This document shows positions 14,651 through 38,262 of a DNA stretch of 64,000 bases, in pieces. Position 1 is the stretch's first letter, and each line of letters opens with the position of its first letter. Source of the DNA: Podarcis filfolensis (Eukaryota); NCBI GenBank assembly GCA_964270895.1, contig OZ185441.1. One strand, 5' to 3'. A program made the position numbers and the translations under genes. Under the pieces are notes generated by a model that did no database searches, had not been told where the DNA came from, and saw only the letters and a list, made by a program, of their open reading frames with translations.

Positions 14651-15752
14651 CTCATGTAGGATGATGGGGACAATGGCTTAGTTTTGGCCCATGGATAGGG
14701 ATGTTGAGGCACCGAAAGGTACTGATCACAGAAGCTTCCTTTCCTGATGTGCTGAAACCCCGGAAACTCTTCTGGCGACAAGTCGGCTGTCGGCGATATG
14801 GTCCCATGATCTTCCCCGCTCGGTTCGGTCTTGAGCGTCATGGACTGGGTGTGATCGATCGCCGTTCTCCTGGACTTGGTAGGAATCCCATCGTTCATGT
14901 CTATTGTGCTGTCAGTGGTGAGGGCGTTGATGGCTGCGACGATGGCCGAACTGGTGTACTGGTTAGTGTTTCCTAGCCATGTCTCATCGGTCACGCTGAC
15001 TCTTGGAGAAGTCTGGGGAGAGGGTGTTGGAGAGGGGTGTGGCGAGTAGGAAGTCTGCCTGCCATTCAGGCTATATTTTCTTTTGTTGCAGGGAGAAGAT
15101 GGCCGGGAGTTGCGAGTGCTCAGCCAATTTTCCTCGGTGATGCTCGTTCTGGGAGACGCCGATGGCGAGTGTCGGGGTGAATTAAGTAACGTGCAGGTCA
15201 CCATGCTCCGTTGATACGCTTCCTCGGCGTCGGTGGTCTTGGGCGACACACACGGCGATTGCCAAGGAGATGTCTGAGGCGAAGTATAGGGATAAGAGTA
15301 ATTGGATTCATAAGACGATGCTTCTGAATTGCAGCTTCTGGAAGACAGGCTGCTTGCTGGACTCAGGCAAGATGGGTCTCGATAGGCCTCTATGTTCGGC
15401 AGGTTCAACGTCGCAGTCGTAGGCGATCTCTTGGTGTTTGGGACGGGCTCCTCGATTTCTGGATCATGGAAGAACTGGTTGTTGTTATGATGCAGCCCCA
15501 AGTAAGAGGTTATTTCGATTCGAGGGCTTTCTAGCGCTGGCACGCCATTAGGTCTGACGTTGGGAGACAGATAATATCCGGCGGTGCCACTTTCAGCATG
15601 CCCTCCATATCCCGAAGGATGATTAGCTGATGGGACAATCGAAATGACTGGATTGGATGTCTGAAGGCCATGACATGGAGCTGACAATGAAGGATGTGCC
15701 ACACTTAGAGGCAAGCTGGAATTTATATTTGAAGGTGCATAGTTATAATGTT
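14651..15752 (-). CDS. NFATC1: NFATC1 exon 2, NFAT homology/regulatory region
   Basis: Acceptor ttttgtttttacag|AA CAT TAT; donor ATG AG|GTACAA; 1102 nt, phase 1 to 2. Encodes the calcineurin-docking PRIEIT (15508..15525), SRR1 (SPASSLSSRSCNSEASSYES), three SP repeats, the NLS KRKY and the LxVP motif (YLSVP). Confidence 0.98.

Positions 15753-24289: not shown

Positions 24290-24328
<39 letters not shown>
24290..24328. repeat. (CAG)13 microsatellite, i.e. (CTG)13 on the NFATC1 sense strand
   Basis: Direct count. Confidence 0.97.
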
Positions 24329-24329
<1 letters not shown>

Positions 24330-24529: not shown

Positions 24530-25440
24530 ACCCGTCCCTTAGGGGAAAGAAGAGAGAGAGAGACGCTTCCATCGCAGCCACGGGAGGCGCCTCCAGATGG
24601 CTCCCTCCTTCCCTCCCTCGGCTCCGCCTCTGCCGAAGACCGTTCTTCCTCCGTCCCAGAAGAACCGCTATATTTAACGTGCTGCAAATAAACTAACCTC
24701 TTCTCCCCCCCCCCCACCTTAAATCCCGGGAGGCCGGAGTCGCCGTTGCCTCGCCACCCACCTTTGCTGCCGGCGCCCTGATCGCTCTGGTTAAACTCGA
24801 AGAGGAAATCGAAATCGAACTCGGGCTCTTCCTCCTCCAGGCTGGTCATGGCTTGGCAGGGAGACGCAGCAGCAGCGGCAGCGACCTCCTCCTTCCCCGA
24901 CGGCGCGGGGGGAAAGTTGCCACGGACGGTCTTCTCCCTTCGCAGCCCCCGGACACCTGTTGCCGCACCAGCGAGCGAGGAGCTTCCTCCTCCTCCGCCG
25001 CCGCCGCCTCTGGACAGGCCTGGGGGTCGCGCTGACCTCCGCGCCGGGCAAAGCTACCCAGGAGCTGCCTGCTCGCTGGCTGGCTGGATGGCTGCAGGTC
25101 CCGGGACGGCGCGGCCCCTCCTGGGCGGCTGTAAGGCGAGCCTGGGGCGCGCGCTCGCTTATCGCCCGATCGCTGCCTGTCTGCGGGATCCTCCCCCTGC
25201 CTTTGTTGATCTACACCCGGAAACATCAACAAGCGACTTGCTCTGCCCGCCTCGCGCTCTCGCTCGCTGGCTGGTTCCTCTTTTTTTAAAATAAACCCTC
25301 TCTGCTCGGGTTACAGGCCCGGAGGGGGGGGGGTGCAGACAGGAGAGGGACGCTGGCCTCTCGTCTCCTCTGCCGCGGCCACCTGTCCGAGTTAGGCTCC
25401 TAGGGGGGAGGGGGGGGTCTACCTCCTTCTCCATTTCAAG
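24530..25440. promoter_or_regulatory. CpG island over P2 / exon 1-beta
   Basis: Dense CpG and GCC repeats. TATA-like TTTATTTTAAAAAAAG on the minus strand near 25281..25296; boundaries approximate. Confidence 0.8.
24762..24849 (-). CDS. NFATC1: NFATC1 exon 1-beta (MTSLEEEEPEFDFDFLFEFNQSDQGAGSK + phase-1 G)
   Basis: The EFDFxFLFEFNQ motif is characteristic of the NFATc1-beta N-terminus. Start context GCCAAGCC-ATG; donor G|GTGGGT at 24760-24761; 88 nt, phase 1. Confidence 0.96.
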
Positions 25441-36165: not shown

Positions 36166-37248
36166 AAACCAGTTGCTTTGGAATCTTAAGGAAGCCCATG
36201 GAACTACTCTAGAACAGCGAGTCACCTTTGCTTTCCTGCAATGCAGGCCATTTTATGAAAGTTTCTTAAATCTCCACAACAAGGCAACAGCGAGGGGAGA
36301 AAGATGGAGGTAGCCGAACCAAGGAAACAAACAGACCATTTTTGAAAGAAGTTGGGGAAGGGGAGGAGACTAGTGTCTTTTCTTAAGTTTTGAAAGTATT
36401 CCTAGACTTTAGAAATCGACAACGGTAAAACGGTTTTTTAATTAGAGCAGGGCGTGTGCTCTGTCAGACCTCGGCTTCCTCCTACCCCAGCCGGCGCTAT
36501 TAAATGCTAGCATTTAGTGGTTAGAAGTAATTTGACGGGCTGGATTGGTTCTGCACACTGTTAACTCTGTAAAATATCGGCGCGCACAATGCACAGAGGC
36601 AGCCGCGTACTCTGAGAACTCCACTGTGTCCTGGGATTCCTTTGGTTTCAGAAGGAGGCTGCTCCACCCCTCCGATCCCTTTCCACCGGCTCCCATAAGC
36701 ATTGCTCTGTTGCACATCCCGCGTAAGCAAGGCGCCTGCCCACACGCAGCAGCCGGCAGCTAGTCAGCCAGCCCACCCCAAGGGACTCCGGCGATGCCCC
36801 TTAGAATAAAAACTAAAAGAGGGGGCGGGGGGGGGGAACCCAGCCTTTCCCTCTCCGCCTTGAGCTCAAGGATCTCGCAGCGCCCAAGGCCAAGTTCAGA
36901 GAGGGAGAGGAGACACCTATTGGCAAGAAGTCGCAGCAGGCAAAACGAAAAAGAAGGGGGAAAAAACCTGAAGGCTGCTTTGGGGAAACACCAGGGGGAC
37001 ACCGCTTCCCTCCTCCCAAGCGCAGCCGCCAGCTTGGCCCTCCCGCCGGTACACACACACACAGACACGCGCACGCGCGCACACACGCGCAAACACAGCC
37101 CGGCGCCTGCCCGGGTTTCCCTTGGCGCGGCTCTCCACAGAAGCAACAGCAGCAAAAATGTCAGAAAAGGCAGAGAAGAATCTGCGTCCGGAGAGGAGAA
37201 AGCGGGAGAAAGCGGCTCCGGGAGAGAGAGCCACCAGCGGTACTTTAC

Positions 37249-37267
37249 CTTCTTCTGCCGATTTCAT
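37249..37267 (-). CDS. NFATC1: NFATC1 exon 1-alpha coding part (MKSAEE + phase-1 G), the Met37-equivalent start
   Basis: Minus strand reads AGCAGC-ATG AAA TCG GCA GAA GAA G|GTAAAG. MKSAEE matches the NFATc1-alpha N-terminus. Canonical donor at 37247-37248; phase 1 fits exon 2 (G+AA gives E of EHY). Confidence 0.93.
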
Positions 37268-37307
37268 GCTGCTGCGACGGGACGGACGCGCACCGAAAGT
37301 TTCCCTT

Positions 37308-37370
37308 TCACCACTGGGCTGGATCTCGAGGCGCCAAGAGGATTTGGTTCAGAGGATCGCCCCTTGGCAT
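37308..37370 (-). other. 20-codon upstream ORF (MPRGDPLNQILLAPRDPAQW*) in exon 1-alpha
   Basis: ATG at 37370, TGA at 37310..37308; the ATG is 103 nt upstream of, and out of frame with, the ATG at 37267. Confidence 0.7.
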
Positions 37371-37819
37371 CCGCTCAGCACAAAAGGAGAGAAAGTGAGG
37401 TGGAGGCAGAGGGAAGAAGGTAGATCCTCTCTCGCGCGCGTGTCTTCACGCCCACGTAGCACAGCGCGCGTCTCCAAAGCTATTAAATGGAGACTCCAAG
37501 CTGGTGTTTCCCTCTCGCCACGGAATTTGGAAAGCCAAACGCGCGCACGGGAGGGGGGGAGGTTTTTTTTGTTTTTAAACAGAATAAATCTGGATCCTAA
37601 GCAGATGTCATTGAAATGAGCGTTGAGTGGGACGTGGGGAGAGAAGGGAAGGGAAGGAGGGGTGGTAAGGGCAGGCGCAAGGGATCCTGCCCCAAAGAGG
37701 AGCGAGAGAGAGCGCTTAGGAAGTTACTCACACGCGCTCTCCCTCCCTTCTCCTGGTGTCTTATTCAGGGCCGGGGTTTATTTTGATCAGGAAAGTTTGC
37801 AGAGTCTCCAAGTCTCTCT

Positions 37820-37930
37820 CTGACGCACGGCTGCTCGGTGACTGCTGCCTTTTTAAAGCTGGAAAACACCCCCCTCCCTCCTTCCCCCTCCCAGCCCCTC
37901 TCCCCGCCCAGAGCCCCGTGATGTCACGGG
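37820..37930 (-). promoter_or_regulatory. NFATC1 P1 core promoter
   Basis: Minus strand GGTGTTTTCCAGCTTTAAAAAGGCAG: TATA-like TTTAAAAA (37850..37857) and NFAT site (37860..37866). Also a GC box (37902..37909), a CRE/ATF-like TGACATCA inside an inverted repeat (37915..37930) and a half-CRE at 37821..37825. Lies about 560 nt upstream of the alpha ATG and resembles the mammalian P1 core as recalled. Confidence 0.75.
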
Positions 37931-38262
37931 TCCTGCGAGCTCCTCTCAGCTGCCTGGCGAAGGAGTCAGCCAGCCAAGCCAGCGGAGAAGAGCGCTGCAA
38001 GCTGGAGAAGAAAAGTCCTAGAGGAGAACCCCGCTCTAGCTCCGCTCCACCTCCAGCGGATTCTGCTGAGCAGGCAGATCTTCGCCACCGTCGAGGCTGC
38101 GACCCAGAGCACCCACCTAACCGATTCTATCTATCCCCGAAGTTGGGTGCGCGGGGGACCTGGTGTCTGAGAAATGTGAGCCGCAGATCAATAAAGGTGG
38201 GAGGAAGAGGGGCTGGAGAGAGAAGCGGAGAGGGACCACGCATGCTGAAATCATTAGGCTGA

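Follow-up and report, generated by a model that had tools for sequence, protein, structure and literature searches.

The window analysed here, a 64,000-nt stretch of DNA from Podarcis filfolensis, carries the 5' part of NFATc1 on its minus strand, an identification made through the similarity of exon 3 and the beta exon, with the gene model compared exon by exon and no joined spliced protein used as a query. Exon 3 (14651..15752) is the first exon common to both isoforms and encodes (E)HYNYAPSNINSSLPLSVAHPS...; it starts at 15752, preceded by ttttacag. Vertebrate NFATc1 proteins are recovered with a 366-residue stretch of it (14653-15750) at E-values as low as 7.5e-212, and the four best matches, unlabelled sequencing-run contigs and Sphaerodactylus NFATc1, show 86-93% identity. 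The coding part of exon 2-beta (24762..24849, minus strand), MTSLEEEEPEFDFDFLFEFNQSDQGAGSK plus one base, extends from an ATG at 24849 to a donor GT at 24761-24760 and matches the beta N-termini of other squamates. Exon 1-alpha lies at 37249..37760, as far as it was compared with reads. The order 37267 > 24849 > 15752 on the minus strand places alpha upstream of beta, with the two start codons 12.4 kb apart in the window and exon 1 splicing directly to exon 3. A perfect (CAG)13 repeat is present on the plus strand at 24290-24329, within the intron, some 430 nt downstream from the donor of exon 2-beta. At the locus of the skink Lerista edwardsae, neither a pattern search nor blastn recovered a recognisable alpha exon in the 10 kb that precede the beta exon, and the alpha exon of this species, if present, would lie more than 10 kb away.

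The coding end of exon 1-alpha reads ATG AAA TCG GCA GAA GAA G|GT at 37267-37247, comprising the main start codon and the six alpha-specific codons MKSAEE (37250..37267), a base at 37249 that is the first of a split Glu codon, and a phase-1 donor GT at 37248-37247. This succession of MKSAEE and a phase-1 donor matches nearly invariant columns of our vertebrate alignment, and joining the exon to exon 3 at 15752 yields MKSAEE-E-HYNYAPSN. The stranded RNA run from a closely related organism (label E, discussed below) covers 37242-37760 continuously, with the start of cover at 37242-37263 and none in 37110-37241, and all of its first mates fall on the plus strand, fitting RNA transcribed from the minus strand. 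Five of these reads end loose at 37249, and their loose part, once reverse-complemented, corresponds to the opening 30 bases of exon 3. The spliced reads differ from the exon 3 of the window at one base: at 15730-15735 on the minus strand they read GCATCT against GCACCT in the window, giving Ser for Pro in HYNYA(P/S)SN, and Ser is the residue found at this position in most other species.

Upstream of MKSAEE the reading frame is interrupted. The ATG at 37370-37368, corresponding to the ancestral Met1 codon by outgroup alignment, opens a frame of 20 codons, MPRGDPLNQILLAPRDPAQW, that is stopped by a TGA at 37310-37308 (whole frame 37308..37370, minus strand). The MKSAEE ATG at 37267 begins 103 nt further downstream, that is, 34 codons plus 1 nt, with 40 nt left between the upstream frame's stop and the main ATG. 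The MKSAEE frame is itself closed upstream by a TGA at 37349..37351 on the same strand; with both frames closed by TGA, no alpha-peptide of about 42 residues can be read in frame from Met1. These coordinates and frames come from a deterministic reading of the sequence and are not statistical, and the preliminary description had given the same positions, spacing, closure and start contexts on the minus strand. The context of the upstream ATG is gagcggATGc, with C at both -3 and +4, and that of the main ATG is agcagcATGa, with A at -3. Also as described there, remnants of the extension fall in three different frames: MP in that of the upstream ATG, PLG (CCT-CTT-GGC, 37341-37333) in the third frame, and GERETFGARPSRRSSMKSAEE in that of MKSAEE, with GERETFGARPSRRSS standing immediately before MKSAEE in the same frame. 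Its contention that deleting one base of the GGGG run restores no frame likewise holds, since this run (37363-37360) lies upstream of the TGA at 37351-37349, and the loss of a G from it would leave the two frames disconnected. The interval between the TGA at 37349 and the MKSAEE ATG at 37267 contains no in-frame AUG, and the sole in-frame near-cognate codons in it are ATC at 37324 and AGG at 37306, either of which might conceivably serve for initiation. As no in-frame AUG lies upstream of MKSAEE, an alpha isoform initiated at an AUG has just six alpha-specific residues, in agreement with the earlier proposal that only the short alpha N-terminus is made in this lizard.

The RNA cover and the splice reads together place the upstream ATG in the spliced alpha mRNA. 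The AUG at 37370 and its in-frame stop are both inside the mature mRNA and upstream of the main AUG, so that the former first codon has become the start of an upstream open reading frame (uORF), as had been suggested. The transcript's 5' end lies beyond 37760. A transcript start near 37825 may be supposed from promoter-like motifs and from RNA cover reaching at least 37760. These motifs, found as pattern matches at 37851..37933 on the minus strand, include TTTAAAA from 37857, TTTTCC from 37866 and a CRE-like TGACATCA from 37926; the cluster resembles descriptions of the inducible P1 promoter, and would be a candidate for the same function. The RNA-covered leader contains a further mini upstream frame, ATG-ACA-TCT-GCT-TAG (MTSA*, 37597..37611, minus strand; context atttcaATGa), whose ATG at 37611 is 241 nt upstream of that at 37370. 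Provided that transcription begins at the place implied by the RNA cover, the AUG at 37370 is therefore not the first: two AUGs, at 37611 and 37370, intervene between the inferred transcript start and the main ATG, both with a pyrimidine at -3. We also observed that RNA depth is 11-21 over 37638-37760 on the minus strand against 3-9 nearer the donor, with cover continuing beyond 37760; with 41 reads in all, this step may be sampling noise, or it could reflect an additional transcript form whose end or splice site lies upstream.

We then examined this region in public sequencing runs, where the exon 1-alpha stretch is present under at least six organism labels from eight studies. Positions 37110-37760 were compared with a DNA contig of organism B (X4, depth 24), a DNA contig of organism E (X9) and the RNA run of organism E (X23). 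Organisms B and E share 92% and 86% of sampled 31-base words with the window and are thus close relatives of the lizard, differing from it by 2 and 1 bases, respectively, over 651 nt. Contig X4 spans 37110-37760 with no indel between the two ATGs, its only differences being adjacent substitutions at 37362 and 37363 that turn AGG into AAA (Arg3 to Lys) and leave the length of the upstream frame unchanged. Contig X9 spans the same interval with a single substitution at 37386 and again no indel between the ATGs. Organism E additionally has a 10-nt deletion at 37195, in intron 1, some 50 nt downstream from the donor of exon 1. The RNA reads of X23 between the two ATGs show no joint, indel or base change, at a depth of about 6 in a single run. 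A further run, X1 of organism A, yielded no sequence for this interval, an outcome that can be a false negative. The 103-nt spacing is accordingly real in at least two further organism labels, and the 1-nt deletion or 2-nt insertion that would restore one open reading frame is absent from 37267-37370 in the two independent DNA contigs and in the RNA reads.

To place the lizard state in an evolutionary setting, we collected alpha N-termini through two homologue searches seeded with NFATc1 proteins and two cluster look-ups. An annotated extension that is in frame and ends in MK[SA]AEE occurs in teleosts (MQD..SKFNFGP..GKERGL..), in many frogs (MPRTSVAAA..LPLGP..FFPFI-), in the turtle Pelodiscus, where a long in-frame extension is annotated, in the crocodilians Gavialis and Alligator (MPSAGAPPAPPKFLPGPPDPARGRETLVALQRS..), in nine birds (MPSAAPPAAAAPPSRDPASGRERPAAAPQRGARPLGST-), in marsupials (..SKFPFGPPAPACGRETLVDLQ..) and in placentals (MPSTSFPVPSKFPLGP..GETLGP..). 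The motifs SKF-x-[FL]-GP, G-[RK]-E-[TR] and MKSAEE are common to the long forms, and the first Met and the second-start M-K-x-A-x-E are nearly invariant across the vertebrate alpha forms of our alignment. Given this taxonomic spread, the N-terminal extension of about 36 residues is evidently ancestral, and in frame in other jawed vertebrates. All four squamate alpha isoforms seen (Pogona, Elgaria, Python and Liasis) start directly at MKSAEEEHY. Within the NCBI pipeline (XP_ models), long starts are given for crocodilians, birds and the turtle, and short starts for at least Elgaria and Python. A homologue search with the Elgaria alpha isoform returned no further squamate clusters and no transcript contigs. 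These annotated protein starts suggest that the disconnection may be widespread in squamates.

The site of the break was sought by frameshift-aware dynamic-programming alignment of outgroup extension peptides against the 121-nt lizard stretch, with both ends anchored; the guide peptides included Gavialis, Alligator, Pelodiscus, two marsupials, six birds and placentals. Two sequences labelled Homo sapiens were viewed among the collected N-termini and served neither as queries nor as guides. The upstream frame aligns with the N-terminal half of the outgroup extensions. For Gavialis, Alligator, Pelodiscus, both marsupials and four of the six birds the best path requires a single 1-nt shift, which falls at 37316-37313 with the crocodilian, turtle and marsupial guides and at 37322-37316 with the four birds (37322 with Anser). 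Along this path the lizard reads ..LLAP-RDPA in the Met1 frame and continues as SG-ERETFGARPSRRSSMKSAEE in the main frame, where a bird reads ..PPSRDPA SGRER... Shuffling the interior bases reproduced the observed score in 0 of 200 trials with Gavialis, 0 of 200 with Pelodiscus and 0 of 150 with Chroicocephalus. The Met1 frame can be followed as ..PRDPA up to 37317 and the MKSAEE frame as SGERE.. from 37315, and the extra base proposed from these alignments would most simply be one C of the CCC run at 37316..37318 on the minus strand. With the placental guides and the two remaining birds (Tyto and Pogoniulus), the best path instead takes two 2-nt shifts and crosses the third frame (PN-PLGASRS), leaving room for a further indel; the net change is +1 under either history. 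The preliminary description had called for at least two indels. Its three-frame reading does fit best with placentals, Tyto and Pogoniulus; the necessity of a second event falls away, as one 1-nt shift suffices, and a single indel appears to be the history favoured by the nearest outgroups.

Taking these observations together, we consider it highly probable that the locus combines a real break in the frame, a short alpha start and the loss in frame of an ancestral extension. We propose that a fixed 1-nt break has separated the ancestral first start codon at 37370 from the rest of its reading frame, such that the first half of the extension would survive as the 20-codon uORF and its second half as untranslated leader in the MKSAEE frame. 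Alpha would then start at the conserved internal Met, the equivalent of mammalian Met37, with MKSAEE(E) as its only alpha-specific residues. Ribosomes scanning a transcript from promoter P1 would meet the weak-context AUGs at 37611 and 37370 and would mostly leak past them, while those starting at 37370 would make a short peptide, terminate near the main AUG and reinitiate poorly. The weak start context makes a damping role for the upstream frame plausible, and we tentatively posit, at rather less than even odds, that this frame acts as a mild cis-repressor at most.

With comparable hesitation, and at somewhat short of an even chance, the break may be real and the upstream frame a neutral relic that nearly all ribosomes pass, the shorter protein being its sole consequence. 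The C residues at -3 and +4 accord with such passage, the encoded peptide is not obviously constrained, as seen in the double substitution of codon 3 in organism B, and we found no paper linking NFATc1 to an upstream reading frame in its own mRNA. Against it, none of the three organism labels compared has lost the AUG or the frame, but these are close relatives and the point carries little weight. A bolder proposal is that the frame break is old and common to all squamates, and that selection has maintained the former Met1 as the first codon of a regulatory uORF; we regard this as unlikely on present evidence, if by no means fanciful. Were this so, squamates would offer a naturally occurring truncation of the alpha-peptide that lacks its first 36 residues, the alpha-specific peptide would be dispensable for inducible NFATc1 function, and the second Met would be an authentic ancestral start site in use across the vertebrates.

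Loss of the extension could conversely be the first step in the decay of the alpha transcript into a non-functional isoform, leaving only the exon 2 beta isoform to matter in this lineage. We hold this to be very improbable: MKSAEE and the phase-1 donor are undamaged, the AUG has a good context, RNA reads show exon 1 expressed and joined to exon 3, the promoter-like motifs are kept, and four further squamates have annotated alpha isoforms of the short kind. Less credible still is an assembly artefact, in which a homopolymer base miscalled in the C run would conceal a continuous alpha N-terminus of 40 residues truly encoded by the animal. A one-base change in the CCC run would indeed reconnect the frames, and this is the usual signature of a consensus error; however, the same spacing recurs in contigs of organisms B and E, derived from other public runs, and in RNA reads, and the four squamates with an annotated short start belong to other families. 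The preliminary description had also entertained a mammalian gain, whereby the ancestral upstream AUG opened a uORF that mammals later fused to the main frame. Nothing beyond the lizard state itself favours this idea, and it is refuted by in-frame extensions with shared motifs in lineages from teleosts to placentals, among which the lizard is nested, so that its probability is close to nil. Continued production of the long form, whether a ribosomal frameshift, editing of the RNA or a small splice inside the exon were to restore the frame, is equally negligible, having no point in its support and against it both the unaltered RNA reads between the ATGs and the lack of a slippery heptamer evident by eye at 37320-37305.

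The shortened alpha start bears on a regulator of immunity and bone. In mouse and human the alpha-peptide comprises 42 residues, is rich in Pro, Ser and Thr, and is encoded by exon 1 under promoter P1; it is the feature by which NFATc1/alphaA, the inducible and pro-survival isoform, differs from the beta isoforms, yet what the peptide itself does is poorly understood (PMC3464794, PMC13297361). A lineage whose natural alpha form has six alpha-specific residues offers a comparison by which to ask whether the first 36 residues matter. The same comparison bears on whether the conserved second Met is a physiological start site, a question that has shaped the design of a mouse exon 1 knockout, in which the second ATG was targeted for fear of its use as a start site (PMC10620225); we found no paper showing initiation at the second Met of mammalian NFATc1-alpha, which the preliminary description had given as established. 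For annotation, squamate alpha isoforms starting at MKSAEE are probably correct rather than truncated models.

Compared with mammalian NFATc1/alphaA (PMC3464794), the lizard gene has the same exon order, the same splice of exon 1 to exon 3, the same MKSAEE end and the same ATG-CCA (Met-Pro) at the old start. The mammalian Met1 is in frame and supplies 36 more residues, whereas that of the lizard is out of frame by +1 and its frame stops after 20 codons. The alpha N-termini of birds, crocodilians and turtle (e.g. MPSAAPPAAAAPPSRDPASGRERPAAAPQRGARPLGSTMKAAEE) are those of the nearest outgroups, and the lizard segments ..APRDPA and SGERETFGARPSRRSS match their two halves, although in these outgroups the extension forms one continuous reading frame, unlike in the lizard. 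Furthermore, the lizard transcript resembles those with uORFs of the C/EBP-beta type, which tune the translation of transcription factors by leaky scanning and reinitiation (PMC3045505, PMC2685610), in that its leader contains a small frame that opens with an AUG and closes a short way before the main one. The lizard frame, too, is found in the gene of an inducible transcription factor, and any translation or regulatory effect of it would be putative; unlike dedicated elements such as the C/EBP-beta uORF, it arose by disruption of a coding extension. The kind of event is a familiar one, in which an N-terminal extension is cut off by a frameshift and its start codon is left behind as a uORF. 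The lizard change is a real but modest and lineage-specific one, and adds a new instance to this class.
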